Shown: positions 1,921 through 60,861 of the stretch, one piece after another
Layout: the number at the start of each line of letters is the position of its first letter
How positions within the stretch are numbered: position 1 is the first letter of the stretch
IMG/VR virus record: IMGVR_UViG_3300024239_000011
Span: 310,001-374,000 of that record
Length of the DNA: 64,000 nucleotides
Direction: 5' to 3' (one strand)
Made by a program: the position numbers and the translations under genes
Notes under the pieces: generated by a model
Told to the model about the DNA's origin: nothing
The model's input: the letters and a program-made list of their open reading frames with translations, nothing else
Database searches by the model: none

Positions 1921-1949
1921 CCAGGAATGTTTGAGTAGAGGGGTTGCGG

Positions 1950-3340: not shown

Positions 3341-4483
3341 TTGAAGGAAATTGATCTCTATCTCGGTGGCTATTTGCTGTGCTGTGGCGACGTATTCGTT
3401 GACCTCGGTGATAAGCGATATGCTGATGCCGTATCGATACAGCCGCTTGCCGGGCGGTATGGCATCTACAACGTTCATCTGGATTCGAACCAGTTGAGCC
3501 TTATCCCCGAGCTTGAGCAGACCTTCCAGGGCGCTACGGTTCGGTTCTACGTCCGCCTGATTGATGGGAACGTCAATTACGCCCCGGCGCCGAACGTCAC
3601 GTTCTTCACCGATGATCAAGCGATCCTTGAACAGATGAATGCCGCAAACAGTGGACTTAATGTGACGTTCTTGCTCACCCCGGATGTTGCAATACAGCCA
3701 GTTGTTTCCCTGATTGAAACTTCGCAAAACACGATTCGCCTCCAACTGCTAGTGGTGAAGAATGGTACGGCTGTGAAGTGGAACCCAGGTACCCTGGATG
3801 AGGTGTTCTTTCACGTCTTTGATCATGTGGTTCGCACGGGTAATCCGCGTATCGTATTCGATTATCCGAGTATGCGTGGCGCAGAATACCATTGCTGGTT
3901 GGATCAGTATTATTTTGTCAATGGTGATACTGAGATTCAATGTCCACTAGTTGGGCATCTTCGCCCCTATGATTTAAATTATGAGCCACTAACCACCGAA
4001 TGCGCGTTATGTGCATTTAATAGTAAGTGCTTCAACTGTCGATGGGCGAACTATCATAATACCGCATCTTTTGTGAATACTGGATGTCGTGATGTGTCTG
4101 AGTTTTACGACAAATCATTGACTACCGTACACAACGTGCAATTATTTCAAGTGTTCAGTCAGATGTATGATAAATTCCGCGAGCAACCGGAAGAAATGCT
4201 CAAGGTTTATACGTTTCTGATATCGGAGAACCGCCCTGATCAATGGATTTCGGTGCGGGAGGTATTTGGTGAATTGCTCAAGGAAGCAACCACCAAGGAT
4301 TATGCATTTGATTTTATGGTTTCTGTGATCTCGGCATATACCGATCCGCTTGCGGTATTTTCCACGGAAACTGTGCATACCATTGGGCGAAATATGTTTG
4401 AGATTGCCGAACCAAATCTCAATCAGCTTTTAGGATACCTATTCCTTATCGAATACGCGAAGATTTACCACGGGGAAGGTTAA
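3341..4483 (+). CDS. Degenerate radical SAM/SPASM-like protein (no CxxxCxxC)
   Basis: Has a SPASM-like CALCAFNSKCFNC..GC cluster but no N-terminal CxxxCxxC. First gene of the translationally coupled rSAM run. Confidence 0.5.
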   Translation: MKEIDLYLGGYLLCCGDVFVDLGDKRYADAVSIQPLAGRYGIYNVHLDSNQLSLIPELEQTFQGATVRFYVRLIDGNVNYAPAPNVTFFTDDQAILEQMNAANSGLNVTFLLTPDVAIQPVVSLIETSQNTIRLQLLVVKNGTAVKWNPGTLDEVFFHVFDHVVRTGNPRIVFDYPSMRGAEYHCWLDQYYFVNGDTEIQCPLVGHLRPYDLNYEPLTTECALCAFNSKCFNCRWANYHNTASFVNTGCRDVSEFYDKSLTTVHNVQLFQVFSQMYDKFREQPEEMLKVYTFLISENRPDQWISVREVFGELLKEATTKDYAFDFMVSVISAYTDPLAVFSTETVHTIGRNMFEIAEPNLNQLLGYLFLIEYAKIYHGEG

Positions 4484-5703
4484 TGCATAAGATCACCGGG
4501 AAGGTTAAGGGGACGGTCCTGTTCTATGATGAAAGGACCGCGATTCTCTACGACCATGACATGGTTCCGATCACCCAGACCCGTGACTATCAACGGTCTA
4601 AGTTTGGTGGTGCTATTGGTTTGTATAACATCGCCAGCGTGCAGTTTGGGCAATTCTGTAATCTCCGATGCACATACTGCCTGCAACGCACTATAGGAAG
4701 TGTTGATAGCGTTCATACCCCGGAGCGTGGTACGAAAATCCAACAGACGGTTGAGTATATTAGACGTACACTTGATCCGTGTATTCCAACCAAGGTTGAT
4801 TTGTGGGGCGGCGAACCGCTGTTCTATTGGGATGATCTGAAGGAGGTTGTCACCAGCCTGGAACCGCATGGGCAGATGCACTTCACGGTGTTTACCAATG
4901 GTATGGCACTCAAGGAAGAACATCTGGCGTGGTTCGCCAGCCGTCCATCCAAATTCACGGTGTCATTAAGCCATGATGGGTTTGGACAAGCCGCGCGTGG
5001 TAAAGACGTTCTGGACAAAGTGCTTGATTTGTTTGCTCACATAATTGCACCGAATATTGATTATTCAATTGCAACTACTGTGTCAAATACCAACCACGAC
5101 CTTCTTGCGCTGAATGATTTGTTCATGGTAGCACTGGATCGTCATGGGCTGCGGGATAGGGCGAAGTGGATCATTGAAATCCCACTGGTGTTCAGCGCAA
5201 AGGATGCTTTTGACCCCAAGCAGTTGCATAAGTTTACCGAGAACCTTAGGGCGTTCTTAACAGAAAATGAGCGCGGAAACCCACGCATTCTTAACAACAC
5301 CTTATGGTCTACTTTCGATCTGTTCGGTATATTTGCCCTGCTGAATCGTTTCAACAGCAAACATATACCAGGGTTCTACCGGTGCCATTTGTCCTATGAT
5401 AATGCCGTGGTTGTCAACACCAATGGTGAAGTGCTTCTCTGTCCTCATTCAACTTCTCCGACGCATGTGTTGGGGTCGGTTGACGGCGGTCAGGTCAAAC
5501 ACAAATCCGAGGTGATTCGCACCGGATATGATCCGCGTTGCGACGGTTGCCTCGTTCGTGATTTTTGTCGAAGCAGTTGCCCAATCATTGGTGGTACTTT
5601 TGAAGATAATCACAAAGTAATGTGGGCGTACTTCTCGACGTTGTACGAGTTCGCCTTTAAGCGTCTTCTTATGGAAGATGAAGTCGTAATCGAGCGAGTG
5701 TGA
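4483..5703 (+). CDS. Radical SAM / SPASM-domain protein
   Basis: CNLRCTYC, WGGEP, FTNG, SHDG, and C-terminal CDGCLVRDFCRSSCP. Confidence 0.92.
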   Translation: MHKITGKVKGTVLFYDERTAILYDHDMVPITQTRDYQRSKFGGAIGLYNIASVQFGQFCNLRCTYCLQRTIGSVDSVHTPERGTKIQQTVEYIRRTLDPCIPTKVDLWGGEPLFYWDDLKEVVTSLEPHGQMHFTVFTNGMALKEEHLAWFASRPSKFTVSLSHDGFGQAARGKDVLDKVLDLFAHIIAPNIDYSIATTVSNTNHDLLALNDLFMVALDRHGLRDRAKWIIEIPLVFSAKDAFDPKQLHKFTENLRAFLTENERGNPRILNNTLWSTFDLFGIFALLNRFNSKHIPGFYRCHLSYDNAVVVNTNGEVLLCPHSTSPTHVLGSVDGGQVKHKSEVIRTGYDPRCDGCLVRDFCRSSCPIIGGTFEDNHKVMWAYFSTLYEFAFKRLLMEDEVVIERV

Positions 5704-5704
5704 T

Positions 5705-6976
5705 ATGAAATTCAAGATCAGCGCCTTGGATACCCAAGCAACCATCATCTATGACAACGAAGCTAACATCTTTTTTGACGACACGGGAGTGCCGCTCACA
5801 CAAACCGCGAATTACATTCGTAGACGCGCGGCCAATTGGGACAAAACGCCGACGTGGCAAACATCCACTAATATTCGGCAAATCAAAATTTCTCTTGGGC
5901 AGTTCTGCAACTATTCCTGTACCTACTGTATGCAGAGCCAAATCGGTGAAGTGGGTAAGGAAGGTTTTGCGAAGAACGTCAACACCGACCGCATCATCGA
6001 AATCCTCAAGACCAATTACACGGTCCCCGACAACGTTCGCATCGAACTGTGGGGTGGTGAACCATTCTTCTATTGGGAAGATATGGTCAAGCTCATGGAG
6101 GCGTTCGATCATGAAACTGCTGAATTCCAGATTTTCACCAACGGATCAACTTTGCGACGCAAGCACCTTGATTTTTTCAAGGGTTTGAAGAGCCGTAAGA
6201 TCGATCTGGGGCTGTCGCACGACGCAGCCAAACAGGAAACCACCCGTGGTAAAAACTATCTCGCTGAAAACCTTGAACTGCTTCGCGAGTATCGTGAATT
6301 TACGAATATCCAACCTTTCTTGAGTGCCACGTTGACCAACGTGAATTATGATTTGTTGGAAATCAATGACTACTTTCGTGCTATGTTGGAGGCGCACTAC
6401 GGGGATACGAACCTGTGGATCAACTTCGACGTGCCGATGATTCACGAAAAGCAGAGTCTCAAGTTCTCACAAGACCAGCTTGATGGTTATAGCGCCAACT
6501 TGCGCAAGTACCTTCAAGCGTGTTGGGAGGATAAGAATCACGAGCGTATGATCCGTGGTTCGTTTTTTGAAGGCGGACAGCCAAGCTTCAAGCGCATCAT
6601 GGAATCCTTCCATTCCAAGGATATTGAGTCATTCATCAAATGTGCAGTGGGTTCGCCTAATTCGTTGACCCTCGATCTGGAAGGCAATGTTAAAACCTGC
6701 CCACACGCCGGGGATGCACATATATTTGGGAACGTCCTTGAGAGCGAAGACCACATTTTCAAGAATGATCCCACCTATGTGCGCACGGTAGAATACGACC
6801 AGTGTCAAAAGTGCTTGGTGCGCCGCTTCTGCCAAGGCGGTTGCCCTATCGTGATTGATAAAAACACGTGGTACTCGTATCACCATGTTTTGTGGACCCA
6901 CTACAGCACCATGTTCCAACTGGCTATGGAATTGTTGCTAGGTAGCAAAAAAGTGATGATCACAAATGTTGACTGA
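5705..6976 (+). CDS. Radical SAM / SPASM-domain protein
   Basis: CNYSCTYC, WGGEP, FTNG, CQKCLVRRFCQGGCP. Paralog of the preceding gene (shared N-terminal YD..I.D..VP.TQT). Confidence 0.92.
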   Translation: MKFKISALDTQATIIYDNEANIFFDDTGVPLTQTANYIRRRAANWDKTPTWQTSTNIRQIKISLGQFCNYSCTYCMQSQIGEVGKEGFAKNVNTDRIIEILKTNYTVPDNVRIELWGGEPFFYWEDMVKLMEAFDHETAEFQIFTNGSTLRRKHLDFFKGLKSRKIDLGLSHDAAKQETTRGKNYLAENLELLREYREFTNIQPFLSATLTNVNYDLLEINDYFRAMLEAHYGDTNLWINFDVPMIHEKQSLKFSQDQLDGYSANLRKYLQACWEDKNHERMIRGSFFEGGQPSFKRIMESFHSKDIESFIKCAVGSPNSLTLDLEGNVKTCPHAGDAHIFGNVLESEDHIFKNDPTYVRTVEYDQCQKCLVRRFCQGGCPIVIDKNTWYSYHHVLWTHYSTMFQLAMELLLGSKKVMITNVD

Positions 6977-8009
6977 TCTGTGCCGCAACGTCTCTATCAT
7001 CAATTTGTTGCTGACCAAAAAGTGCAACTACTCTTGCTCATATTGTCACCAGCTTCACAAAGACGATGTGCGACTTGCGGTATCACCACCCGAGCGTATC
7101 CACGAAATTGTGGAAAAGCTTGCTACGATCAATGATATCCCGAAGAACGTGCGATTTTTCGGCGGGGAAACGCTACTGCGTTTCCCCGATATCAAAGCCT
7201 ATTTTGAGGCATACCAACCGAACTATCCGGCACTGGGGTTTAGTGTTTATTCGAACGGATCACTCCTAACTCCTGACATGGGCGAATTCCTCGCCAAGAA
7301 CGGCGTAGACCTCACATTATCCATCGATGGGTATACAGAGGACGGTCAGCTTGAAAAGGACTATAAACGCCTAGAAACCGTCTTCCCGGCGATCTATCGC
7401 ATCTACGCCACTCACGGACGTATGATATCGGTGTCGGTGACCATCGACATTGCCAAAGTTCAGGCAGCGAAGAACCTGATGGTGTTGTTTACTCGGCGTT
7501 TTCCACGCACCAAACTTTTCATTTCTCCCGTTTTCCATTCGAAGGGTGATGGGAATACCCCATGGAGCATGGATGCGATTGATGACCTTCTGGGGTTTGT
7601 GGAGACCATCAACCAACAACGGGCAACACCGATCCTACAGGGATTGAATGTGATCTCATCGCCTCAGAAATGTATTAGCGTGGATTGGACATTGGCAGTG
7701 GACCTGTCGGGCGATCTGTCCAGTTGCTTCTTCACGATCACCGACAAGCTGACCTTCCCCGAGTACGTCTATGGGAACCTGTTGGACGACCGATTTGACG
7801 CGCCCCAATATGCTGCGATCTTGGAGCGGAAGCGTCAGATGTTCGACAACCCGTATTGCGCGGCATGCAGGTTCAAAGAAACCTGCATATCTTGCTCGAC
7901 GTGCGGGATGCTGTTCAACGAGAACCGGTGGTTCGAAAACGGCGAATGCAAGCCCTTGGTACATTTCTTGTCTGGGATGCATCACATGACCAGGGATGAA
8001 CCACTATGA
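6966..8009 (+). CDS. Radical SAM / SPASM-domain protein
   Basis: CNYSCSYC, FGGET, SNG, SIDG, CAACRFKETCISCSTC. Confidence 0.9.
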   Translation: MLTDLCRNVSIINLLLTKKCNYSCSYCHQLHKDDVRLAVSPPERIHEIVEKLATINDIPKNVRFFGGETLLRFPDIKAYFEAYQPNYPALGFSVYSNGSLLTPDMGEFLAKNGVDLTLSIDGYTEDGQLEKDYKRLETVFPAIYRIYATHGRMISVSVTIDIAKVQAAKNLMVLFTRRFPRTKLFISPVFHSKGDGNTPWSMDAIDDLLGFVETINQQRATPILQGLNVISSPQKCISVDWTLAVDLSGDLSSCFFTITDKLTFPEYVYGNLLDDRFDAPQYAAILERKRQMFDNPYCAACRFKETCISCSTCGMLFNENRWFENGECKPLVHFLSGMHHMTRDEPL

Positions 8010-9511
8010 ATGAAATTACCACTCTGCTGCGTAGCCGTGGGGTCTTTCAAGTGGTACTCACCAATCGCTGCAACTACAATTGCAACTACTGCTATCAGGA
8101 ACGCAATTTTAAGAAGTTCCCGAACGAGTTCGATAGCGCCGAGCAACTTGATCGTGTTTGCGGTAAATTGGTCGAACACCGCAAGGACGACACCCACTTC
8201 GAGTTCCAATTTCTCGGCGGCGAACCGCTGTTGAAGAAAAATGTTTTAATGAATTTTATGCGGGATTATGCATGGAAATATCCCAAGGTAGTATTCAACG
8301 TAATCACCAATGGTAAACTTCTCGATCACGAAACGGCAGTAGAGTATATCACGAGTCACCCTCTGGCGAAAATCTATTTTTCCTGTGACGGTATTGACCT
8401 GAATACCAATACGCATCCCAAGACCTGGGAACGTATTGCGATACTGTATGACCGGCTCTATCAACGCTTCCCAGAGCGCATTGGCATCATCCCGGTACTA
8501 ACCAGCAGTACCATCCCTAATTACGTTGCCCTATTGGATTTGATGGCGGAAAAATATCCACTCAGTCATGTTCATGCATTGGCCGCAATCAGCGACCATT
8601 TCGATACCAACTTCGAATGGTCGCCCGAGCATATTCGCAGCGTCGGGGAACAAATCCGTCCGTTCTTCCTGAAACACCCAGGTTGGACCATTGACTATTA
8701 CATGTGGGATTATCCGCTCGATTCCTTCCTCGATTCGGCGGACGACCCGGCGGTGATGCCAAACGGTGACATACATCTGATGCCATCGTATTTTATGGGT
8801 GAAGCAGCAGACCTAAGCAATAAACCAGACTTCAATGTAATCACCGGGGAAGTATACCCGTACCTTGCCCAGAAACAGATCAAAGAGCGGTTGATTCAAG
8901 CGGCGAAAACTGCCAACTCGCGCTGTCAGACATGCCCGATTTCGGGGCATTGTCTTCCGATGAAATTCTTCACATTGGTACACTTACCGGACGAGCAAAT
9001 TACCGCAGAGACCGTGGTTGATGCAGAATGTAACACCATGCTTGATTTCTTCTGGAATATGCCGGTGTTCGCACATTTTCCCACCGGCATATTTCAGAAC
9101 CTTCAACAGCAAGTCCAACTGTTCCAGAAGTATCGGACACGATATGTTCGGGCGCTTTATGTTTTAGACCGTTTGGCTATTCCAGTTCTGCAACTTCTAA
9201 ATGACGATTTTGTTGAGAATATCGAAAAACTTGGCGTTGGAAAATATTTCTATCTAGATATGTATGGGGTTTCCCGCCATACCGAAGAAGTGCGCTCCGC
9301 ATATAATACTCCATTGCGGGATATTTTTTGTCATTTCAAGCATCATCCGAAACGTCGTCCACTTCACCCGGCATTGGTATGTAAAGTTGTTCGTGAATTG
9401 TTGGATAAACCGACCGACCATTTGTTTGAGTTAATTATTCCGAACCTTTACCACAAGGTCTATTATGGTCCAACGTGGCATTGGTCGTTTGACGACACTT
9501 ATAGGTGGTAA
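8006..9511 (+). CDS. Radical SAM protein with partial SPASM and C-terminal extension
   Basis: CNYNCNYC, LGGEP, ITNG, SCDG, CQTCPISGHC. Confidence 0.9.
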   Translation: MNEITTLLRSRGVFQVVLTNRCNYNCNYCYQERNFKKFPNEFDSAEQLDRVCGKLVEHRKDDTHFEFQFLGGEPLLKKNVLMNFMRDYAWKYPKVVFNVITNGKLLDHETAVEYITSHPLAKIYFSCDGIDLNTNTHPKTWERIAILYDRLYQRFPERIGIIPVLTSSTIPNYVALLDLMAEKYPLSHVHALAAISDHFDTNFEWSPEHIRSVGEQIRPFFLKHPGWTIDYYMWDYPLDSFLDSADDPAVMPNGDIHLMPSYFMGEAADLSNKPDFNVITGEVYPYLAQKQIKERLIQAAKTANSRCQTCPISGHCLPMKFFTLVHLPDEQITAETVVDAECNTMLDFFWNMPVFAHFPTGIFQNLQQQVQLFQKYRTRYVRALYVLDRLAIPVLQLLNDDFVENIEKLGVGKYFYLDMYGVSRHTEEVRSAYNTPLRDIFCHFKHHPKRRPLHPALVCKVVRELLDKPTDHLFELIIPNLYHKVYYGPTWHWSFDDTYRW

Positions 9512-10890
9512 TCATGGACAACCCTTTCAGTCAGGTCTATTGGATCAATCTGCTCCTGACTAATAAATGTAACAAGCAGTGTTCGTACTGCTATGAGCAG
9601 CATAAAGCCGAGTTTGAACGGTCGTACATCAATGCACATCGTGTGGATGAAATCTGCGCGAAGATGGACACCATGAACTCGCTTCAGAAAACCCTCCATT
9701 TTTTTGGCGGCGAACCCATGCTGAAGTTCGACACCATCATGGAGTACATGCGGGCATCGTCCCATAAATACCCCACATTGTCTTACGTGATTATCACCAA
9801 CGGCACGCTACTGACTCCTCAGAAATTCGAGGATTTCGTTTCGCACGGCGGCTCATTCTACATTTCCTGCGACGGCTGGGGGATCGATAACACTGACATC
9901 ACAACCAAGGATTTCAGTGCTATCAAGGATGTGGTTGAGGCATGCTTCCCGGTGGTCGCAGCCTATGATAAACGCATTACGTTCGACGTAGTTGTGCATC
10001 CCCGTGAGGTCGCGTCGTTCGGGCGGTTTATGCAGTACCTCGCCGGAAGTCCGCATTTCGAGCAAATCAATATCCACATCAAGCCATTGCTATACAGCAT
10101 GACCGATGGGTTGGTGCGCTGGGATGACGCAGCGATTAATCAATTCTTACAGGAATGTATGAATGCCATTGTGAAATCAAAGGGCATCAATTTCGAGATA
10201 GAAGGGTTCTACGAGAAGTCATGGGGCACGTGCATGACCATGGCAAACAACCTGAATGTTGATGTTGAGGGTAATTTTTCAGGGTGTTATTTTCTACTGA
10301 ACCAACATAAAGCCACCTCGGCATTCGATGATGCCATTTTTGGCAACATTCTAACCGGCGAGATTGATACTGCCAAAATCGCCAACTTTAAACGCCTGGA
10401 ACAGGAACTCTACCAGTCCTCTAAATGCCAATCTTGCGTATTGAACCCAAAATGCTTCCAGTGCAGTGCTGGACTGTACACAACCCTTGGAAAGTGGTAC
10501 GACAACGACAAGCATTGCGAAATCGTTATCCCATTCATCCAACGGTTGAATTCCTTCCAAGCCATGAAAGAGGATGCATATATCATTGGCTGCCTGAAGG
10601 AGAAAATCCAGGAACATGGGTCTGAGTGGTTTGTGACTCGCCTTAAGTATTGGACGACAGTTCACATGCAAGCGACGTTGCTGGAAATTTGTAATGCACA
10701 TATCCCAGCACAAAACATTATGGCGGGAAATGCGCCACTTGATTTGGGTCAGTGGCTCAGTGATGCGGGGGCAAAGCAAGTAGCAGAGCTTCATCACATT
10801 TTCACGCCTGCATTGGCTGATCTTTCTGCTCAAGATCAGTTTACGCTTTGCGTTGCGCGTGTGATTGAGAAAGAACATCCCAAAACCTAA
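9505..10890 (+). CDS. Radical SAM / SPASM-domain protein with C-terminal extension
   Basis: CNKQCSYC, FGGEP, ITNG, SCDG, CQSCVLNPKCFQC. Confidence 0.92.
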   Translation: MVIMDNPFSQVYWINLLLTNKCNKQCSYCYEQHKAEFERSYINAHRVDEICAKMDTMNSLQKTLHFFGGEPMLKFDTIMEYMRASSHKYPTLSYVIITNGTLLTPQKFEDFVSHGGSFYISCDGWGIDNTDITTKDFSAIKDVVEACFPVVAAYDKRITFDVVVHPREVASFGRFMQYLAGSPHFEQINIHIKPLLYSMTDGLVRWDDAAINQFLQECMNAIVKSKGINFEIEGFYEKSWGTCMTMANNLNVDVEGNFSGCYFLLNQHKATSAFDDAIFGNILTGEIDTAKIANFKRLEQELYQSSKCQSCVLNPKCFQCSAGLYTTLGKWYDNDKHCEIVIPFIQRLNSFQAMKEDAYIIGCLKEKIQEHGSEWFVTRLKYWTTVHMQATLLEICNAHIPAQNIMAGNAPLDLGQWLSDAGAKQVAELHHIFTPALADLSAQDQFTLCVARVIEKEHPKT

Positions 10891-10898
10891 TAGAAAAC

Positions 10899-10935
10899 CC
10901 TCCATGGACTGCTAAATACGTGCAGTCCATGGAGG
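10899..10935 (+). promoter_or_regulatory. Late promoter inside an RBS-sequestering hairpin
   Basis: Perfect 14-bp inverted repeat cctccatggactgc / gcagtccatggagg. TAAATA is in the loop and the GGAGG RBS is in the 3' arm. Confidence 0.75.
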
Positions 10936-10941
10936 TGCTTG

Positions 10942-11805
10942 ATGGTGGTAACGGTAATCAGCGGCGGTGATAATTCATCCAGCTATGCAAAAGACAAAGC
11001 TTTTGATAATTCGATAACGACATCCTGGCGAAGCTTACAGACCGGCGTTGATGTTGTAAATGCCGCATGGCTCGGTCAAGATTTCGGTATTCCAGTTTAC
11101 GTGATTTCTGCGAGCTACCGTAAAGGGTCATACGATCCGGCATCGGTTGCGATACAGTACAGTGATGATGGATTGTCATGGACGAATACTGGTGTAACGT
11201 TTACCAGTTTTAGCAACGCGGTGGAAAAGAAAAGTATAGCAGTGGGTACACCGCATCGTTACTGGCGTGCAATTGCCACAGGTGCCACGGCAGGTACCAA
11301 CCCATGGGAAATTGTAGAATTGACTTTCGGCATCGCCACAACAGGATTACCCAAGTACATAACGAAGGTAGTGTCTCTTGGCGCAATAACCAATTTGAAC
11401 GCAACGGCATTGAAGGCACGGGTGAATACGTTGAAGACAAAGTTTGTTCAGAACGGCATTCTCACGGCAGTAGATATGCAGGAATTTTGGAGCATTCTTC
11501 GGGATTTCAGCCAACACTACCACCCATACACGGAAACGAAGCAGGCGATTGATAATATTCAGGCTGGTATTGATGCTATTACCGATTCAACAACAAAGAC
11601 CAATGCCCAGAACGCCGCAAACCCTCATAAGGTAACCGTTTTGAGTAACACCGGTCCTATATTATTTGACAATCCGATCACATCTGGGTTTTCTGTGGGG
11701 TTTGTATTGGATAAAGTGACAATGAATACGTTTATTGAAATGATAAATGCATCCCAACGTCATAAACATAGTGTAACTGATCGTTTTTTTGACACAGCAG
11801 TCTAA
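10942..11805 (+). CDS. Discoidin (F5/8 type C)-like domain protein with two HxH fibre-like modules; probable virion protein
   Basis: KAFD..TSW..WLGQDFG..IQYSDDG..W..HRYWR..WEIVEL, then QHYHPYTE and RHKHSVTD. Preceded by a late promoter. Confidence 0.65.
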   Translation: MVVTVISGGDNSSSYAKDKAFDNSITTSWRSLQTGVDVVNAAWLGQDFGIPVYVISASYRKGSYDPASVAIQYSDDGLSWTNTGVTFTSFSNAVEKKSIAVGTPHRYWRAIATGATAGTNPWEIVELTFGIATTGLPKYITKVVSLGAITNLNATALKARVNTLKTKFVQNGILTAVDMQEFWSILRDFSQHYHPYTETKQAIDNIQAGIDAITDSTTKTNAQNAANPHKVTVLSNTGPILFDNPITSGFSVGFVLDKVTMNTFIEMINASQRHKHSVTDRFFDTAV

Positions 11806-11816
11806 GGAAGTCCGAT

Positions 11817-12200
11817 ATGGCTGAACAAAATGTTCCTTCGAATACCGATGCAGCAACGTATTCGACCACAGCAGCGGAAACCCCGCAAATCACCGCACCG
11901 CAAATACTGACGGCCAACATGTTCCAAAACATGTTGAATGTGCTGGAAAATGCTCTCGGTAGCCATACCCATACGCATCAAGATACCGCATTGAATGCGT
12001 GTACGTGTTGGAACTATACACCGTGTGACCGTTTAGTGACCAACCTTACCTGTGTTGATTGTTCGCCTGGAAATTGTGCTGGGCAGTGCCGCACGTGTGG
12101 TACCGCGCAATGTGGGACTTATGAGTGTGCCTGTGCTGATGTTCAGGGATGGGTTGATAATACTCCTGGGGGTAACGGGACACCCTGCACACTGCCTTGA
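11817..12200 (+). CDS. Cys-rich protein, putative radical SAM substrate (HxH leader plus 12-Cys core)
   Basis: Cys-free N-terminal half ending SHTHTHQD, then 12 Cys in about 66 aa. Adjacent to six rSAM-like genes. Confidence 0.65.
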   Translation: MAEQNVPSNTDAATYSTTAAETPQITAPQILTANMFQNMLNVLENALGSHTHTHQDTALNACTCWNYTPCDRLVTNLTCVDCSPGNCAGQCRTCGTAQCGTYECACADVQGWVDNTPGGNGTPCTLP

Positions 12201-12752: not shown

Positions 12753-13037
12753 ATGACGGCAGTATCGCAAAGAGAATTCGAGCGTATGGCGCAAGCAGTT
12801 TACCAACAGGAATTGAAAACTCCATGGTTTGCGCCAGTGGGGTTGATGCGCAGCATCAACCCCACGGACTACAATCCGTGTGCGGAGATTGCGTCGGTAC
12901 CTTATATAAGCCTTCAAACCCGACTGAAGATGGCGGGGCTTGATACGTTCGAGGTCGTATGTGACGAGCGGAACAACACCACCGAAACAAAGTCCAAGGT
13001 TGATTACTTGGCAGCTATTCGAGAGGTAGTGGGATAA
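12753..13037 (+). CDS. Mini-protein of tail-sheath-like motifs with C-terminal DYL tag
   Basis: PWFAPVGLMR and FEVVCDERNNT resemble conserved T4 gp18-family motifs. Ends KVDYLAAIREVVG. Confidence 0.6.
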   Translation: MTAVSQREFERMAQAVYQQELKTPWFAPVGLMRSINPTDYNPCAEIASVPYISLQTRLKMAGLDTFEVVCDERNNTTETKSKVDYLAAIREVVG

Positions 13038-13351
13038 TGACGACCGTAGGCGCACTTATCACGGAGAAGGCATACTTGATTCTGTCCGAGCATCATAAGG
13101 ATTTATGGGATCGGCTTGGTATCGAGGTTATTGGGATTGAAGAACTTGACGGCGATGAAGTAGGTGACGAGGGTCCAAACCTACTTCTTGATTTGAAGGT
13201 AAAACGCGATCTCCCGGATGGCACTTTACTGTTCGTGCGGGTCGGGCGTGTGGTTGAAGGTGAAAACGGTCCCGTAATGGACAAGAGTGCCTATGGGGCA
13301 ACGCCACTCATTGATGGGGAGCGTCGGGACGATCTGACGTGGTGGGGATGA
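13037..13351 (+). CDS. Hypothetical protein
   Basis: TAATG-coupled ORF. Confidence 0.6.
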   Translation: MTTVGALITEKAYLILSEHHKDLWDRLGIEVIGIEELDGDEVGDEGPNLLLDLKVKRDLPDGTLLFVRVGRVVEGENGPVMDKSAYGATPLIDGERRDDLTWWG

Positions 13352-13560
13352 GTTGGACGAAGCATGTTGTTTTCTTCACGCCATTGTATCCAGCACTTCC
13401 TTGTGTTCCGGTGAACCAAACAAAAATTCTCCTTACCCAGGAAATAATTGACCGGATGCGTCAGGCATATATACAACACAAAAAACAAGAACTACTAGAC
13501 GATTCTATCGTCTACCAGCACTCATCCCCACGAGGAAAGATCGAATATTATGAGCAATAA
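13348..13560 (+). CDS. Hypothetical protein, weak resemblance to a portal (gp20-family) segment
   Basis: ATGA-coupled ORF. KKQELLDDSIVY recalls the portal ELLEDxxxIYR motif. Confidence 0.45.
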   Translation: MSWTKHVVFFTPLYPALPCVPVNQTKILLTQEIIDRMRQAYIQHKKQELLDDSIVYQHSSPRGKIEYYEQ

Positions 13561-13762
13561 AATAATATGCCTGGAAATCCAGGCAGTGGGGCGTGGACTT
13601 CGTGAGGTTTCAGGGTATATCGAATTCGTTAATTTTACACCGTCATGTGACGACGATGTGGAACTGGAACGTCTCGCAAACGATATTGAATCCTTGGAAA
13701 CCATTGAAACCGAACAGGTTGATTATCTTGGTATTATCCGACAAGTCATTGGGTCTAAATAA
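13550..13762 (+). CDS. Small protein with C-terminal DYL tag
   Basis: Ends QVDYLGIIRQVIGSK. Confidence 0.6.
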   Translation: MSNKIICLEIQAVGRGLREVSGYIEFVNFTPSCDDDVELERLANDIESLETIETEQVDYLGIIRQVIGSK

Positions 13763-13788
13763 GTCAAACTGTCAATCAGAGGTGGTAA

Positions 13789-14172
13789 ATGGTCAATTTT
13801 GATATGCGCATTCTGGTAGTCGATGACTATGCTACGATGCAGAAGATTGAGCGCAATTTGCTCAAGCAGATTGGTTTCGGGAATGTTGATACCGCAAATG
13901 ACGGCTCCCAGGCACTTCAAATGCTTCGGTTGCAGCACTATGATCTTATCCTGTCCGATTGGAACATGGAGCCGATGACCGGTCTGATGTTGTTGCGCGA
14001 AGTGCGCAATGACCCTGCCCTGAAGCATATCCCATTCATCATGGTAACTGCGGAAACTAAACAGGAAAATGTGATCGCTGCTCGGGAAGCAGGGGTGTCC
14101 AACTATATAATTAAACCCTTTACGGCGGATACATTAAAGAAGAAACTACAGTCGGTTATCGGGGATTTCTAA
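13789..14172 (+). CDS. cheY: Chemotaxis response regulator CheY
   Basis: Single receiver domain: ILVVDD, phosphoacceptor in SDWNMEPM, MVTAE, YIIKPF. GAGG RBS. Confidence 0.92.
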   Translation: MVNFDMRILVVDDYATMQKIERNLLKQIGFGNVDTANDGSQALQMLRLQHYDLILSDWNMEPMTGLMLLREVRNDPALKHIPFIMVTAETKQENVIAAREAGVSNYIIKPFTADTLKKKLQSVIGDF

Positions 14173-14624
14173 TGTTCTCTCGAAAGCGCGATGCGCTTGA
14201 ACTCCTATGCACGTTGTACGTCATTTTTAAACTGGCAAAAACCAAAGGCGACCTCGCCCTTGAGTCGCATTGCGAGCAACCAGAACACAGCCCGATATTT
14301 GTTAATTCCAGCTTGTCAAAAGCAGAAAAGGTCGTACTTGCGGATTCGATGCGACTCTTAACACTCGGGTTAGATAGTCCTGATGATGTGGAACGTTTTA
14401 TGGTCGGTATGTTTGTCATATCCGTCAAACATACCGACAGGATGGATGTGATTATTGAAGCATTTGTGGCACATTGCAAAGGCTATGCACCGCAAATTTC
14501 CATTGAATTTGCTCGTGCCGCGTTCGGTATTAAAAACCGCCCGACTTTTCAGGAAACTGAGGAAGCAATCACTAACCTCCTTCTTGATGATTATCAGTAT
14601 AAATGGCAACATCACGGGAAATAA
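14172..14624 (+). CDS. Soluble MotA-like protein (two cytoplasmic segments fused, no TM helices)
   Basis: LELLCTLY..LALESHCEQPEHSPIF..DSMRLLTLG and GYAPQISIEFAR..RPTFQETEE match the MotA cytoplasmic loop and C-tail. Coupled to cheY. Confidence 0.75.
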   Translation: MFSRKRDALELLCTLYVIFKLAKTKGDLALESHCEQPEHSPIFVNSSLSKAEKVVLADSMRLLTLGLDSPDDVERFMVGMFVISVKHTDRMDVIIEAFVAHCKGYAPQISIEFARAAFGIKNRPTFQETEEAITNLLLDDYQYKWQHHGK

Positions 14625-14701
14625 TCACGCGCATATGTTTCGTCTTTGCGATCTTCACAAACCCGTGCTAAAAATGGCCAAAATGGTTTTGTGAGGTCGA
14701 A

Positions 14702-15268
14702 ATGTTTAAGTGGCTGGGTAGACTGCGATGTGATGTTTCGGCTCAAGAGATTGAGCCGCCCTCGGTGGTAGTATCACCAACCCCAGAGGAATACCTGAAT
14801 CGGGATTTCCCGCCATTGTGTTCGGAATTCAATTCCAGTGGGGAAGTTGAGACGGCACGCACTGCGTGGGTACAATACCAGAATGAAAAACGGCGATCCG
14901 AGCAGCAGCCCGAATTAGACAAACTGATTACTCAAGACAATATCGACCGGGAAGCGGCACAAACCTTCAAACCGAACGTGAAGATCGTTCGGTACGCGGC
15001 TGGTGATTTTCTAGTTTACGAAGGGCAGGAATACCCTCGTAATTTCATTGAGTCCATTGTTATTACCAATCCTGGCGTCGAACCGCAAGTGGTGCAACTT
15101 CACTGGACGATGCGTTTTCCGGGAACATTTGCCGCTGTATTAGTTCCGGCATCAATAACGATGCGTTTGTGTTCGGGGACGGAAATCGTCATTACCTGTA
15201 ACCGGTGGAACGTGGATATTCTTCATAAAGCATTGATTCATGCATGGAAACATGGAGAGCCGGATTGA
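14702..15268 (+). CDS. Hypothetical protein
   Basis: GAGG RBS, ORF tiling. Confidence 0.6.
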   Translation: MFKWLGRLRCDVSAQEIEPPSVVVSPTPEEYLNRDFPPLCSEFNSSGEVETARTAWVQYQNEKRRSEQQPELDKLITQDNIDREAAQTFKPNVKIVRYAAGDFLVYEGQEYPRNFIESIVITNPGVEPQVVQLHWTMRFPGTFAAVLVPASITMRLCSGTEIVITCNRWNVDILHKALIHAWKHGEPD

Positions 15269-15570
15269 ACATTGTGCTGGTTTCATCGGATATGTGGGCA
15301 CGACTGCATGAGGTATTACCATCTCGCGATGCCATCATTATGATAGTGCGCGAGACAATGCAAACTGTTATGAATACCTATTTGTTCGAAATGGTTGATG
15401 AAAACACTCGGCAATCCCTTTCCTTACATATGAGGCGTCAATTGTCCGTTTTACCACTCGAAGATTTCGCAGTGTTTGCTAAATTTCAGGGCAATGGTAT
15501 TACGGTTGATGTCATGGTCAAACACAATGGGGAATGGATTTCGTTCCCCGGTAAGATGGGTACTTGCTGA
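15244..15570 (+). CDS. Small protein resembling the tail sheath C-terminal domain
   Basis: YLFEMVDENTRQSL..LEDFAV..ITVDVMVK resembles gp18-family LFExNDxxTR..DF.V..D(I/V)YVK. Confidence 0.5.
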   Translation: METWRAGLNIVLVSSDMWARLHEVLPSRDAIIMIVRETMQTVMNTYLFEMVDENTRQSLSLHMRRQLSVLPLEDFAVFAKFQGNGITVDVMVKHNGEWISFPGKMGTC

Positions 15571-16013
15571 TGTTTCTTGACCCAACCCCTGAAATTCGGA
15601 AGAAGCATCGATTTGCTTCAAACGAATATTTGTACGATGACAATGTTGTCGTGATTCATGCGGATTGGTTTGGGAACCGTACCATCGAGGTTGTGCGTCC
15701 ACATCACATTCCGACCAGCGATCTTACCGGCTCTGTTGTCGGTTTGTATCAGTGTTTTGCTGTATTACCACCCACCACGGCAACCATTATCGACACGCCA
15801 TTTGGGTTCTGTGTCGAAGACGGGAATCGGTACTACGCATCGGATTTTTACGACAGCAAAACTGATCCCTTGCTGGTGGTCGAGCAAGTTGCCGTGCATG
15901 TGATGGATCAAGCTCGTTGGCACATTACCGAGCGAATTCACGAGGCAGTCCAGTGTATCCTTGCGTTGGTTCCGGAACAATGCGATACTCGGCCAACCGA
16001 ATCTTCCATATGA
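15564..16013 (+). CDS. Hypothetical protein
   Basis: ORF tiling. Confidence 0.55.
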   Translation: MLMFLDPTPEIRKKHRFASNEYLYDDNVVVIHADWFGNRTIEVVRPHHIPTSDLTGSVVGLYQCFAVLPPTTATIIDTPFGFCVEDGNRYYASDFYDSKTDPLLVVEQVAVHVMDQARWHITERIHEAVQCILALVPEQCDTRPTESSI

Positions 16014-16192
16014 GTTTTGGTCAATGACTGAAATATGGGACTACAAACAACCAGAACCGTTTCGGTGTCCCCTCAATAGTAGCTGCCAAAGCTGTGACGA
16101 GGCATGTGTACCGTTAGTTCCGGAGGATTTTGAACAACAAATCAAGGCTTACAAAGACTTGATGGACGGCAGCAGCAACGATTGAGGCGAAC

Positions 16193-16366
16193 ATGACGAT
16201 AAGCGGTGGGTTGATGATTTTTGTGGCGGCTATGGCTATTGCCATTGTGATGTTTGGGCTGAAAGCGGCGGTGTTCTTGGCAATCGGTGCAACCGTCGTC
16301 TTGGTATTCTTGCGTCCAGAGGTGGGACGGACATGTATTACCAAGATTCGTGAGCATTTGAAATGA
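16193..16366 (+). CDS. Small membrane protein (57 aa, below ORF-track cutoff)
   Basis: GAGG RBS; translation MTISGGLMIFVAAMAIAIVMFGLKAAVFLAIGATVVLVFLRP...; stop overlaps the next ATG. Confidence 0.55.
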   Translation: MTISGGLMIFVAAMAIAIVMFGLKAAVFLAIGATVVLVFLRPEVGRTCITKIREHLK

Positions 16367-16632
16367 AGAAACTCACGTTCCTACTGGTGCTAATAGCACC
16401 GACCATCGCTCACGCCGATTACGCTTTGCTATACCCTGCGGGGCACTCTCGACCTGGGGTGCAATTGGAAACGATTGAGGCATGTCGTCGTGGCGCAGCA
16501 GAGATATACCATTTCTGGGATACGTCCGGTAGATATAGCTTCCTCTGCATGAACACTAAAACCGGGGTGATTGAGGAAGAAGTAAAATGCGACGACCGCA
16601 AATGCACCGCGTATCAGAAAGCCGACAAATGA
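16363..16632 (+). CDS. Secreted 4-Cys small protein (paralog 1)
   Basis: Signal peptide ending IAHA; pattern EAC..C..TG..C...C. Confidence 0.65.
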   Translation: MKKLTFLLVLIAPTIAHADYALLYPAGHSRPGVQLETIEACRRGAAEIYHFWDTSGRYSFLCMNTKTGVIEEEVKCDDRKCTAYQKADK

Positions 16633-16967
16633 TTCGATCCCTGCTTGCGCTTATGCTTATCAGTGTGCCGTCACTGGTGCATGCCGGTGAATACATACTG
16701 ACGATGGGTATTGGGTACAACACTGCAACAACAGCAACACTCAATAATATCGAAGCCTGCATCACAATGGCGGCTGAGTTACACGGGCGATGGCGCGGTG
16801 GTGAACGGTATCAGTGCTTCGACAAGGATACCGGGAAAATGGTTGTAAAAATCGGATGTAACGACAATCGCGAGTGTAAAGCCTGGGATCGCACCGAGCG
16901 GTTGGTTGCCATTGTAGATATCACCAACGATGGTAAGGAAACCTCATTGCGGGCGGTGATGCCGTAA
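16629..16967 (+). CDS. Secreted 4-Cys small protein (paralog 2)
   Basis: Signal peptide MIRSLLAL..VHA; same Cys pattern. Confidence 0.65.
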   Translation: MIRSLLALMLISVPSLVHAGEYILTMGIGYNTATTATLNNIEACITMAAELHGRWRGGERYQCFDKDTGKMVVKIGCNDNRECKAWDRTERLVAIVDITNDGKETSLRAVMP

Positions 16968-16988
16968 CTGTTTCAACAGGAGAAGATT

Positions 16989-17210
16989 GTGATCTATCCG
17001 ATTACCAAAGAACTGGAAGCGCAATTGAATAGCGACCAGCTTCATGCTTTGCGCGAGAAAATCGCTTCGACCAAAGTCCTTGCTCATTCGAGTAAAATGG
17101 ATATTTGGTTGAGTGACCCGCGCCCGTGTTATGCAAGCAAGCACATTGCCTATTTCACCATGGCGGTGATCGTGTCTGCATTCGCTGTATTCATTATCAG
17201 CTTCGCCTAA
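16989..17210 (+). CDS. Small protein with C-terminal TM helix
   Basis: GGAG RBS; hydrophobic C-terminus. Confidence 0.55.
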   Translation: MIYPITKELEAQLNSDQLHALREKIASTKVLAHSSKMDIWLSDPRPCYASKHIAYFTMAVIVSAFAVFIISFA

Positions 17211-17219
17211 GAGGGTGCT

Positions 17220-17579
17220 ATGAAGAAATTCTTGCTCGCAACCGTTTTGTTCTTCCCGTTGTTTGCCAACGCGGCAGATTTGGAACATACGCTGATTGTT
17301 GAAATGGGCTTTCAACATGCGGTCTCGGTGCCTGTTAGCGGATCGGAGGCGTGCAAGAATTTGGCGTTCGACATCTACGCGAAGAAGAATGGTAATAATG
17401 GCGCACCACGCGGGGCACAAACTCTTCGGGTTGGGTCTGCTAATGTTGATATTGGACAGCGTATCATCGACCCTTGGTTCTTCGATTGCGTCAACTCAAA
17501 ACTCGGTAAAATCACGCATAGCATTATGTGTGAAAAAGGCGAGTGCAGCGTCATTGAGTACAAGGGAGACATAAAATGA
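17220..17579 (+). CDS. Secreted 4-Cys small protein (paralog 3)
   Basis: Signal peptide ending FANA; EAC..DCVNSKLG..C...C. Confidence 0.65.
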   Translation: MKKFLLATVLFFPLFANAADLEHTLIVEMGFQHAVSVPVSGSEACKNLAFDIYAKKNGNNGAPRGAQTLRVGSANVDIGQRIIDPWFFDCVNSKLGKITHSIMCEKGECSVIEYKGDIK

Positions 17580-18169
17580 ACATTACCGGAGACACATTCA
17601 CTGCCGACGCCGAAGTTATCGAGTACGATTGTTTTCAAATTCCGATTTTCATTCATACCATCAAATCAGTGGCAGACCTTCGTGGTGGTTGGATGTTCGA
17701 AGATGGTATTCATTATGCGGTCAACGAGGTTCGGGATGAGAAGGCGCTTCGCAGCGTCCTCATTGAGAAACTGCACGAATCCTTGAATGATTTCAATGCT
17801 CCACCGGCTGGACATGTGCGGGGTGTGATTAACTCGGCGTTGTGCCATAGTAATCGGCTGACCCCGCATGATATTGACGAAATCTACGCCATGGGAATCA
17901 ATCCCATTCGATTTATCAATGGGGCATTGGTGATCTGGGGACAACGCATCGTCAACCGGGGTAGCCCCCAGAACATGTATTGGGACCGGGGTAGGGGGAA
18001 ATTTGACCTCAATCCATGGTTTGAGCAGTTCAGCACGACCACAAAGATACGTTGGGAGTTTCCCATGATTTGGGATATGTCGAAACTTTTGGCGTCCGCA
18101 CCCGCACCAGAAGCCCTGAAAACCGATTACCTTGCCGCCATCCATGACATCTGCAAGGCGGAACAATGA
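17576..18169 (+). CDS. Tail-sheath-fragment protein with C-terminal DYL tag
   Basis: PPAGHVRGVI..DEIYAMGINPIRFING..VIWGQR matches gp18-family PAG..RG..LY..GINP..V(I/L)WG. Ends KTDYLAAIHDICKAEQ. Confidence 0.7.
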   Translation: MNITGDTFTADAEVIEYDCFQIPIFIHTIKSVADLRGGWMFEDGIHYAVNEVRDEKALRSVLIEKLHESLNDFNAPPAGHVRGVINSALCHSNRLTPHDIDEIYAMGINPIRFINGALVIWGQRIVNRGSPQNMYWDRGRGKFDLNPWFEQFSTTTKIRWEFPMIWDMSKLLASAPAPEALKTDYLAAIHDICKAEQ

Positions 18170-18348
18170 GCCAGTATGGTTTTTATACGGCGATCACCTC
18201 GTCAGTAGTTGCATTGGTCAACACCGTGATCATGCAATTACTGCGACTGTGGTACGGGTTCGAAGCCATGATCGCTTACGGTGCAATTATCTTGCTGATC
18301 TGTATGACAATCATTTGGCAGATGTTCCGTAAAAAGGACAAGTCATGA
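18166..18348 (+). CDS. Small two-TM membrane protein
   Basis: Two hydrophobic segments and a basic tail. Confidence 0.55.
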   Translation: MSQYGFYTAITSSVVALVNTVIMQLLRLWYGFEAMIAYGAIILLICMTIIWQMFRKKDKS

Positions 18349-26967: not shown

Positions 26968-27732
26968 TCACCATTGAAAATGGTATGTTTTGAAAAACGC
27001 CCGCCAATGTGTGCATTCATTGGCGGCGAAAGTTTCGCGCATGAACAAGTAGTTTCCGGTGGATGTTGATAGGTAATGCGCCGGGGCGTCGAACTGGATG
27101 CCCATGGCGATATCCTCCATTCCTTTGTACAAGACTGAGACGATATTCGTGGGTACACGCTCGTCTTCAATGACATACATACTGTCGTTGATGATAAAGG
27201 AAACCGGTTTCCCACCGAACGAGACATCAGACACGGCACACATAGCACTCGTGGTTCTGCGTTCGAATAAGTCGAGTGCGGTAGCATGATTCATCATGAC
27301 CACATTACCACGACCTCGGCGCGTTTTTGCGGCGCACAAGTTTCCGCCTCGATTTATGATGATGAACGGTGAAACACCATCGCCCCCGCAAAAGGTAAAT
27401 TTTCGCGGTGAATAATAGGCTGTCAGGTCAACTGCCTCTGGGTCAGCCGTGATAAGGCTGATAAAGTATTTCTCTGCTTCAGCTAGATCGGTTACTTTGA
27501 CCCACGTGCCTTTTCCATCAAACGGGCGACACACATCCATGCGCAGTTTGATCGTTGGGCGAGGCGCATCCGGTGCATATGCTTTGGTAATGAACCAAGC
27601 TGTATACTGACGCTCGAATTCGGTTGTCGGATTTGTTGGTGGTTGTGGGTATTCCCGTGGCGTTTGATCTACCATGGTCACCAATGCCGATACCGTGTCT
27701 CCGGTATGGATACCAAGAAATGGATGCTGCAT
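26968..27732 (-). CDS. Truncated, divergent major-capsid (gp23-family)-like protein
   Basis: INRGGNLCAAKTRRGRGNVVMM and VSVLYKG..DA resemble gp23 ANxIAxxTRRGKGN and VGYKG..DAG. Confidence 0.6.
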   Translation of the reverse strand: MQHPFLGIHTGDTVSALVTMVDQTPREYPQPPTNPTTEFERQYTAWFITKAYAPDAPRPTIKLRMDVCRPFDGKGTWVKVTDLAEAEKYFISLITADPEAVDLTAYYSPRKFTFCGGDGVSPFIIINRGGNLCAAKTRRGRGNVVMMNHATALDLFERRTTSAMCAVSDVSFGGKPVSFIINDSMYVIEDERVPTNIVSVLYKGMEDIAMGIQFDAPAHYLSTSTGNYLFMRETFAANECTHWRAFFKTYHFQW

Positions 27733-53349: not shown

Positions 53350-53378
53350 GAAAAGGGCGGGATTTCTCCCGCCCTTTT
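53350..53378. terminator. Bidirectional terminator
   Basis: aaaagggcggga-tttc-tcccgccctttt. Confidence 0.8.
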
Positions 53379-60657: not shown

Positions 60658-60861
60658 TTACCAACCTTCGGAAATTACATCTCTGATCAACGTTAGATAA
60701 TTGATACTGTCGTTTTTAGGCGACGCAAACACTACCCATTTACACCCATCAAACAAATAAAGGTTTCCATCTATTGTGTTGAGGTAAACGTCATTGCGGG
60801 TAGGTGATGGCAAGTGTTCAGCAGACGGCGTGTGATAAGTAATTGTTTCAATGATCATCAA
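60658..60861 (-). CDS. Mini-protein: one tail-fibre repeat plus C-terminal NYL tag
   Basis: NDVYLNTIDGNLYLFDGCKWVV matches GQLWFNTTDNKMYLFNGTTWVV of the fibre at 1950. Ends INYLTLIRDVISEGW. Confidence 0.65.
   Translation of the reverse strand: MMIIETITYHTPSAEHLPSPTRNDVYLNTIDGNLYLFDGCKWVVFASPKNDSINYLTLIRDVISEGW

Follow-up and report, generated by a model that had tools for sequence, protein, structure and literature searches.

Why does a phage with a complete contractile tail sheath gene also encode, far from that gene, three small ORFs that look like pieces of the sheath? We examined this question in a 64,000-nucleotide window (positions 310,001 to 374,000) of the 543-kb genome of an uncultured subsurface megaphage, IMG/VR record IMGVR_UViG_3300024239_000011. 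A preliminary description made from the sequence alone noted three intact, translationally coupled ORFs (here ORFs A, B and C) with gp18-family motifs, too short to be sheaths and not within a structural operon, two of them ending in a shared 'DYL tag'. It proposed that they are baits mimicking the phage's own immune trigger proteins, with the tag sequestering or degrading the bound sensor, or alternatively that they poison assembly of competing phages. The observation is confirmed by our analysis, whereas the proposed interpretation is only partly supported.

Sheath-related ORFs outside the tail module

All three ORFs are present and intact, overlap or abut their neighbors, and contain the motifs described (Table 1). 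The motifs match the phage's own 1059-residue sheath, the closest sequence relative in the genome. BLASTP aligns ORF A with the sheath in two colinear segments, WFAPxG and VVCDExNN (E-values 1e-3 and 9e-3), and ORF C at 33% identity over 73 residues (E-value 8e-6), but does not detect ORF B. As an unbiased test we built an HMM of the C-terminal 260 residues of the sheath from this phage and 80 IMG/VR relatives and searched it against all 5,268 six-frame ORFs of the genome. The hits are the sheath itself (1e-145), an obvious 135-residue sheath fragment (2.9e-22), ORF A (1.3e-4), ORF C (8.5e-3) and ORF B (0.015), with the next hit at 0.74, and the aligned segments are colinear with the sheath. 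Reciprocally, a profile of the ORF C family hits only ORF C and the sheath in this genome (4.5e-5), and only sheath proteins in the PDB (T4 gp18 residues 485–540, 1.7e-6).

Table 1. Features of the mini-sheath region, tagged ORFs and related genes. Coordinates are those of the 64-kb window unless marked as genome coordinates.
Coordinates	Strand	Feature	C-terminal tag	Remarks
1944–3284		Fibre-like protein		Shares phrog_8309 with the ORF at 60658–60861
12753–13037	+	ORF A, 94 aa; composite of two sheath motifs (aa 15–35, WFAPVG region; aa 57–81, FEVVCDERNNT region) followed by the tag		Identical in three independent assemblies
12999–13034	+	Tag of ORF A	VDYLAAIREVVG	Retained where the payload is swapped
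13550–13762	+	70-aa tagged ORF	EQVDYLGIIRQVIGSK	Payload unassigned; one synonymous strain SNP
13789–14624	+	CheY homologue (127 aa) and TM-less mini-MotA (150 aa), between ORFs A and B
15244–15570	+	ORF B, 108 aa, untagged; predicted stand-alone sheath C-terminal (handshake/gp25-like) domain		HMM alignment of aa 32–78 to profile positions 164–214; two synonymous and one non-synonymous strain SNPs
17576–18169	+	ORF C, 197 aa; sheath core domain (aa 18–135), variable helical linker (aa 136–182), then the tag
17627–17980	+	Sheath-core domain of ORF C (PAGxxRG ... INPI ... WGQ)
18122–18166	+	Tag of ORF C	TDYLAAIHDICKAEQ	Predicted helix 185–196
18166–18348	+	60-aa ORF translationally coupled to ORF C		Weak similarity to small membrane proteins (PHROG E-value 0.027)
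26968–27732	-	Untagged mini-capsid protein, 254 aa		38% identical over 112 aa to the phage's Gp23-like major capsid protein
53377–53790	-	137-aa tagged ORF	APVDYLQCIRDVV	Payload unassigned
53787–54113	-	108-aa ORF with a tag-like end	GVDFLQITKEVVE	Weak profile match (E-value 5.3), but at the extreme C-terminus and between two tagged paralogues
54097–54567	-	156-aa tagged ORF	PPVDYLDCIKQCVQGG
60658–60861	-	67-aa ORF with a tag-like end	NYLTLIRDVISEGW	Payload matches the N-terminal part of the fibre-like protein (BLASTP E-value 2.6e-4)
175933–179112 (genome)	-	Tail sheath, 1059 aa
272208–272417 (genome)		Canonical GPW_gp25 gene
276755–277162 (genome)		Sheath C-domain fragment, 135 aa		4.5 kb from the gp25 homologue, in the baseplate region

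The three ORFs differ in how much of the sheath they retain. ORF C is a stand-alone sheath core domain: its AF2 model has a pLDDT of 86, Foldseek and VIA-align matches are to sheaths only, and it superposes on residues 262–389 of the Mu sheath with a Z score of 10.2 (rmsd 2.8 over 111 residues), with all 28 listed matches being sheath proteins. It belongs to an unnamed family of phage proteins, mostly of 150–300 residues, whose 31 representatives conserve PAG..RG..INPI..WGQ and lie in non-structural neighborhoods in other phages. ORF B is predicted from an ESM Atlas model (pTM 0.65) to have the sheath C-terminal fold, with a TM score of 0.67 to a 111-residue cluster carrying Phage_sheath_1C and of 0.56–0.63 to gp25 and sheath-initiator clusters. 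ORF A keeps only the two motifs and has no fold support (ESM pLDDT 0.43).

None of the three can be a sheath subunit. Such a subunit would carry Phage_sheath_1 and Phage_sheath_1C above the curated thresholds in one chain of at least about 350 residues, but Pfam gives no hit for A, B or C, genome scans with PF04984 and PF17482 find only the true sheath and the 135-residue fragment, and PHROG sheath models do not reach significance. Each of the small proteins keeps a single sub-domain, and no N-terminal part of the sheath is retained. In the T6SS, TssB and TssC show that sheath domains can be encoded as separate small polypeptides, but together these rebuild a full sheath protomer and are encoded with the tube, whereas here a complete sheath gene exists elsewhere and the small ORFs are diverged accessory paralogues.

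The genes lie at 322–328 kb in the genome, outside the tail module, among genes for CheY, mini-MotA and small secreted proteins. The description of the region as not a structural operon is mostly right; a virion protein and a fibre-like gene lie 9–12 kb upstream, but five radical-SAM genes separate them from it. Giant phages often scatter their virion genes, and the predicted gp25-like fold of ORF B could suggest minor tail parts (an extra sheath initiator, terminator or decoration adaptor) encoded away from the tail module. We consider this improbable. Stand-alone gp25/TssE initiators are of similar size (about 110–140 residues), but ORF B has no sequence match to PF04965 or PF10934; PF04965 matches only the canonical gp25 gene in the baseplate region and PF10934 matches nothing in the genome. 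The mini-sheath genes are also absent from five relatives of 194–490 kb that share the sheath at about 60% identity, and essential structural parts would not be swapped between strains as described below.

A C-terminal tag shared by small ORFs

The tag on ORFs A and C is confirmed, and is larger than the preliminary description reported. Eight ORFs carry DYLxxI within their last 20 residues, compared with 0.45 expected from shuffled sequences (maximum 4), and a tag profile finds 14 ORFs in all. These at least 14 small ORFs, seen only in this phage and a co-occurring sister strain, end in [V]DYLxxI[RH]x[IV]VG, always 0–4 residues from the C-terminus. Synonymous codons vary among the copies, so selection acts on the peptide. 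The 12-residue tag is predicted to form an amphipathic helix following a low-confidence, Glu-rich linker. The proteins are modular, with variable front parts (payloads) that are often pieces of core phage proteins: besides the sheath, tagged payloads derive from the prohead protease, the fibre-like protein and a neighboring 586-residue protein. Recognizable payloads are biased toward core proteins, however, because only those have detectable families.

A comparable arrangement is seen in T4 gp43, gp33 and gp55, where a short C-terminal peptide on an unstructured linker ties unrelated proteins to the sliding clamp (PMC2988020). Here, however, the phage's own DNA polymerase ends in ..VELDTDLFSF rather than in the tag, and no large replication or transcription protein carries it. 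The ORF C family mostly lacks the tag in other phages. Mini-sheath function therefore cannot depend on the tag, and the tag says little about what mini-sheaths do in general.

Strain variation and payload exchange

In co-occurring strains the payloads of ORFs A and C are replaced, with breakpoints at the gene start and the first tag codon. For ORF A the joint is 12749->12989. For ORF C the joint is 17548->18124 with a loose end at 18169, such that the tag forms a conserved island between two divergent segments. Flanking genes are 81–97% identical, whereas ORF C is 52% identical and the coupled 60-residue ORF downstream, which diverges together with it, is 50% identical. In the 52%-identical ORF C allele, 13 of 14 tag residues are retained. 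The variant allele of ORF A seems to lack the CDExNN motif just before the tag (loose end ..AFHVALREY), and the sheath motifs in ORF A may be relics rather than working surfaces.

The genes are nevertheless intact and constrained rather than decaying; neutral decay had been named beforehand as an outcome that would count against the preliminary proposal. Strain SNPs in the region are mostly synonymous, and the ORF C core has a pN of 0.24 against a saturated pS. The genome does hold about 23 short paralogues of larger proteins, and ORF A keeps only two short motifs, so functionless debris of partial duplications with the tag as a DNA-level repeat might be envisaged. This reading is already largely refuted and is very unlikely, given the intact frames in several independent assemblies, the purifying selection on the ORF C core and tag, the synonymous variation among tag copies and the conservation of the ORF C core across its 31-representative family.

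Possible roles of the mini-sheath and tagged proteins

We regard the identity and architecture of these proteins as shown with high confidence: the three ORFs are real, selected genes for domain-sized, strongly diverged paralogues of the phage's own sheath, and A and C belong to the tagged set. What they do is inferred from sequence alone, including any binding, packaging, cleavage or immune function, and no RNA run contains the region. Our preferred but tentative explanation is that the payload acts by competitive binding through the sheath contact surface it retains, the target being sheath protomers, sheath-like assemblies or a factor that recognizes sheath, and that the helix docks all family members to one common partner. 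Because the payloads are swapped between co-occurring strains while the tag is kept, we read them as accessory 'conflict' proteins rather than housekeeping assembly parts.

For the partner of the tag we weakly favor addressing to the prohead or virion, although this remains doubtful. The nearest analogue is the T4 internal proteins (IPI-III), described as diverse defense proteins sharing only a capsid-targeting sequence (PMC3012670). Like these, the tagged proteins are small, very diverse, variable between strains and share one short conserved peptide, and the head module is T4-type, with a Gp23 capsid protein and an S77 protease. The linkers contain Glu, consistent with gp21-type cleavage, and [LIV]xE occurs within 14 residues upstream of the tag in 8 of 14 ORFs compared with a 15% background (p 3e-4), although this enrichment was noticed post hoc in linkers that are Glu-rich anyway and is only a hint. 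The T4 peptide, however, is N-terminal and of different sequence, and T4 internal proteins are not fragments of virion proteins.

An alternative, which we think unlikely, is that free core or handshake domains cap sheath protomers, either preventing premature polysheath formation by the phage's own sheath or blocking assembly of rival myoviruses, tailocins or the host T6SS. The ORF C family conserves exactly the most conserved sheath motifs, gp25/TssE-type initiators, whose fold ORF B is predicted to share, bind sheath arms by strand addition, and the further 135-residue sheath C-domain protein lies in the baseplate region. However, the context is non-structural both here and in other phages, and payload hypervariability is odd for a housekeeping chaperone, given that a sheath C-terminal segment from one of the same samples is 100% identical. 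A poison aimed at near-identical sheaths would also hit the phage's own sheath. The proposed poisoning of rival assembly has no direct evidence.

The immune decoy proposal, in which the small proteins mimic the sheath, capsid and protease epitopes bound by host pattern-recognition sensors and soak these up, is likewise unlikely on present evidence, and is neither shown nor excluded. There is circumstantial support for a conflict role: payloads derive from several core proteins, an untagged mini-capsid protein is present, A and C are strain-variable cassettes, the genes lie in an accessory, host-manipulation context with CheY and mini-MotA, and in another phage a mini-Gp23 gene sits directly beside an ORF C relative. 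Avs-type sensors recognize the conserved core folds of many structural proteins (10.64898/2026.01.04.697583), but that preprint, the only one read, names the tail sheath only as a possible, not yet shown, target, and keyword searches found no sheath-sensing defense. No direct evidence supports binding of immune sensors, or the tag as a degradation or sequestration signal, and the variation of its last residues argues against recognition of the C-terminal carboxylate. A decoy resembling the trigger could equally activate a sensor.

A broader possibility, improbable but not excluded, is that this megaphage lineage runs a modular 'mini-self' system, cutting domain-sized pieces out of its own sheath, capsid, prohead protease and fibre proteins, fusing many of them to one addressing helix, and exchanging the payloads between strains as cassettes. 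The pieces would act as molecular mimics that blind host sensors of the core phage proteome or disable rival contractile machines, a general decoy or dominant-negative strategy not yet described for phages.

Stand-alone sheath-domain proteins encoded outside tail modules have no Pfam or PHROG family, although relatives occur in many phage metagenomes. The tag is a clear in silico case of a short addressing peptide shared by many unrelated small phage proteins, and the exchange of payloads exactly at its boundary gives a handle for finding a hub protein in an uncultured 543-kb phage. If the payloads act as mimics, this would open the question of whether phages counter sensors of structural proteins with decoys, and if the tag addresses the virion, it would extend the T4 internal-protein principle to huge phages.

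Genomic setting and sheath relationship of ORFs A, B and C

The 543,035 bp virus record, of which the window is bases 310001-374000, derives from a subsurface metagenome, and its head is of the T4 type, with a Gp23-like capsid protein and an S77 prohead protease. The preliminary description drew attention to three small ORFs (A, B and C) as miniaturised sheath fragments; the real tail sheath is a 1059-residue protein encoded elsewhere in the genome. The three ORFs lie within a run of short overlapping ORFs downstream of a virion protein, a fibre-like protein, five tandem radical-SAM genes (phrog_1802), an F5/8-type-C (discoidin) protein, and a Cys-rich ORF; the segment from the radical-SAM genes to the Cys-rich ORF could be a peptide-modification (RiPP-like) cluster in a megaphage. 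Between ORFs A and B is a CheY homologue (NF007901, 1.4e-45; about 70% identical to bacterial CheY), followed immediately by a MotA fragment that matches MotA in two separate stretches (TIGR03818, 1.4e-17), which we read as its cytoplasmic parts (loop and C-tail) without the membrane segments, suggesting interference with the host flagellar motor. A metagenome scan anchored on CheY returned only bacterial cheY genes. Three paralogous-looking proteins just upstream of ORF C have signal peptides and conserved Cys pairs, but no family was found for them. A 469-residue ORF beside the sheath gene looks, by eye only, like a homing-endonuclease-type protein with repeated DNA-binding motifs.

Coordinates of features in the window (w), the whole genome record (g) or individual sequences
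Location	Strand	Feature	Size
w 4483-12200	+	Five radical-SAM genes, discoidin protein and Cys-rich ORF	
w 11817-12200	+	Cys-rich ORF	127 aa
w 12.2-20.8 kb	+	Run of short, overlapping ORFs	
w 13789-14624	+	CheY homologue and MotA fragment	150 aa (MotA fragment)
w 15748-15878 and 16670-16992		Strain-variable hot spots inside ORFs 15564-16013 and 16587-16967	
w 16363-16632, 16587-16967, 17220-17579	+	Three small paralogous-looking proteins upstream of ORF C	
w 26968-27732	-	Truncated capsid protein paralogue, untagged	254 aa
g 175933-179112	-	Tail sheath	1059 aa
g 205994-207268		Gp23-like major capsid protein	
g 208647-209282		S77 prohead protease	
g 254587-255259		Three small ORFs with weak capsid hits	
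g 272208-272417		Canonical gp25	
g 276755-277162 (L002:1405-1812)	+	Sheath C-terminal domain fragment, untagged	135 aa
g 380871-382565 and 389482-391113 (L011)	-	Family-B DNA polymerase, two genes	
g 385860-386090		Tagged ORF between the polymerase genes	76 aa
L001:18-1427	+	ORF beside the sheath gene	469 aa
L104:1418-2008 (unrelated viral contig)	+	ORF with tag-like end	196 aa

Direct BLASTP comparison with the phage's own sheath gives two colinear segments for ORF A (E 1e-3 and 9e-3), 33% identity over 73 residues for ORF C (8e-6), and nothing for ORF B. Pfam and PHROG sheath models do not reach significance for any of the three, and single-sequence phmmer does not detect them. We therefore built a clade-specific HMM of the last 260 sheath residues, using this phage and 80 IMG/VR relatives, and searched all 5,268 six-frame ORFs of the genome. 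The sheath (1e-145) and the 135-residue fragment (2.9e-22) are followed directly by ORF A (1.3e-4), ORF C (8.5e-3) and ORF B (0.015), with noise starting at E 0.74. The aligned pieces are colinear with the sheath, A covering profile positions 75-95 and 202-226, C 115-149, and B 164-214. The three ORFs first singled out are therefore exactly those that an unbiased search picks out, and the observation is both confirmed and extended. The 135-residue fragment, made of the sheath C-terminal domain (PF17482, 4.6e-7), has an N-terminus that looks like a twin-arginine signal (TRRGFFAGL..ATA), and lies 4.5 kb from the gp25 homologue.

For ORF C, an exhaustive profile search found 31 cluster representatives, mostly of 150-300 residues, which share xIPIHIH..PGIHYAV..PPAGxxRG..GINPI..WGQ. 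Their profile hits only sheath proteins in the PDB (T4 gp18 residues 485-540, 1.7e-6), and in this genome only ORF C and the sheath (4.5e-5). A first AF2 run with a 2-sequence alignment was uninformative (pLDDT 33), but with the family alignment AlphaFold gives pLDDT 86 and pTM 0.75. The top 19 Foldseek matches to this model are all sheaths, and VIA-align gives Z 10.2 to Mu sheath residues 262-389 over model residues 18-135. Beyond the core the model has low-confidence helices and a terminal helix at 185-196, which is the tag described below. In other phages, ORF C relatives sit among non-structural genes such as RecA, a methylase, SspB and phosphatases; one (contig of P0004; ENA ERZ1426827) lies directly downstream of a 240-residue Gp23 fragment, on a contig that also encodes ribosomal protein S21 and RF-1 fragments.

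The ESM Atlas model of ORF B (pTM 0.65) matches a 111-residue cluster carrying Phage_sheath_1C (TM 0.67), as well as gp25, sheath-initiator and Mu gp46 clusters (TM 0.56-0.63). On this predicted structure B is therefore a stand-alone handshake-type domain. The canonical gp25 of this genome is encoded elsewhere. ORF A, in contrast, has only the two motifs and no confident fold, an Atlas search being uninformative, and it has no homologues beyond identical copies.

A shared C-terminal tag

Eight ORFs carry DYLxxI within their last 20 residues, compared to 0.45 expected from shuffled sequences, and a tag profile raises the count to 14 ORFs of 46-197 residues, including ORFs A and C, with the motif always 0-4 residues from the end. 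The codons differ at synonymous sites, so it is the peptide that is conserved, and we reject the interpretation of the tag as a DNA-level repeat. The payloads preceding the tag include a truncated prohead protease (phrog_207 1.8e-14; PF03420 4.6e-6) that is 30% identical to the true protease, a piece of the fibre-like protein (2.6e-4), and a piece of a neighbouring 586-residue protein. A 175-residue tagged ORF was considered as a mini DnaB/RecA fragment, but this rests only on weak hits (E 0.04-0.17), and an Atlas search with the payload of a 137-residue tagged ORF was uninformative. Untagged small versions of core proteins are also present: ORF B, the 135-residue sheath fragment, and the truncated capsid paralogue, which is 38% identical over 112 residues to the Gp23-like major capsid protein (E 4e-12).

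Several identities for the tag were considered. By eye it resembles ..DYIYIPARLVG in the 135-residue fragment, and BLAST runs the tag of the small protease onto ..YPRAVYEALNYA of the true protease, raising the possibilities that it is the sheath's own C-terminal strand or the protease's post-catalytic helix. However, the tag profile does not score the sheath, the fragment or the protease, and neither reading is supported. A role as a sliding-clamp-binding tail is unlikely, as the DNA polymerase ends ..LDTDLFSF and PF09116 finds no gp45-type clamp. This family-B polymerase is split into two genes about 7 kb apart, with about 15 small ORFs between the halves, one of which is tagged. Resemblance to the FtsZ C-terminal peptide or the SspB ClpX-binding tail is no more than a possibility.

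Five huge relatives (194-490 kb) that share the sheath at about 60% identity have neither ORF C-like genes nor multiple copies of the tag. A scan of viral contigs for the tag found one plausible case among chance hits, in an unrelated 5.7-kb contig (L104), where a 196-residue ORF following a possible holin and a possible endolysin (both recognized by eye only) ends QDYLNQIRSIVGYKPK, a near-perfect copy of the tag. The T4 late-promoter motif TATAAATA is not placed upstream of the capsid or sheath genes, and a sigma-70 scan gives the same count as shuffled sequence.

Strain variation and possible roles

A sister strain, represented by contigs L003-L006, has flanking genes that are 81-97% identical, whereas ORF C is only 52% identical, and the 60-residue ORF coupled to it, weakly similar to small membrane proteins, only 50%. 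Synonymous sites in ORF C are saturated (pS 0.75), whereas pN is 0.24 in the core and 0.47 in the linker, and the tag is identical at 13 of 14 residues. Alignment of contigs from four metagenome runs with the region shows that the co-occurring strain replaces the payloads of both tagged sheath-derived ORFs, with joints at 12749->12989 and 17548->18124 that fall at the gene start and the first tag codon, although searches did not recover the variant ORF A allele. ORF B and its neighbours differ only by SNPs, most of them synonymous. Neutral decay is therefore excluded, and the payloads behave as exchangeable cassettes anchored on the tag. Two further strain-variable hot spots have dense SNPs, compensating indels and a 201 bp replaced segment. 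An 869,618 bp contig from another assembly (L193; ENA ERZ27245855 k141_178484) carries this region with identical ORFs A and B, and may be a concatemer, a misassembly, or a larger genome than the 543-kb record.

The analysis thus establishes homology to the sheath, the fold as judged from predicted models, selection, a modular architecture, and cassette behaviour, whereas it is an inference that the small proteins act by binding through retained sheath surfaces and that the helix docks them to a common partner. An analogy with the T4 internal proteins is favoured by the T4-type head, the tagged protease paralogue, the small sizes, and the presence of an [LIV]xE site upstream of the tag in 8 of the 14 ORFs against a 15% background (p 3e-4, although this was a post hoc comparison). 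Against it, the tag is C-terminal, and nothing shows packaging. The proposal in the preliminary description that these proteins are immune decoys is unproven; it remains possible, as does a role in capping sheath assembly, although a limited search of the literature, by keyword and in one preprint, revealed no sheath-sensing defence. We conclude that these proteins represent a new, unnamed family of sheath-domain miniproteins, together with a putative C-terminal addressing tag that, apart from the one plausible case in L104, is seen only in this phage and its sister strain.
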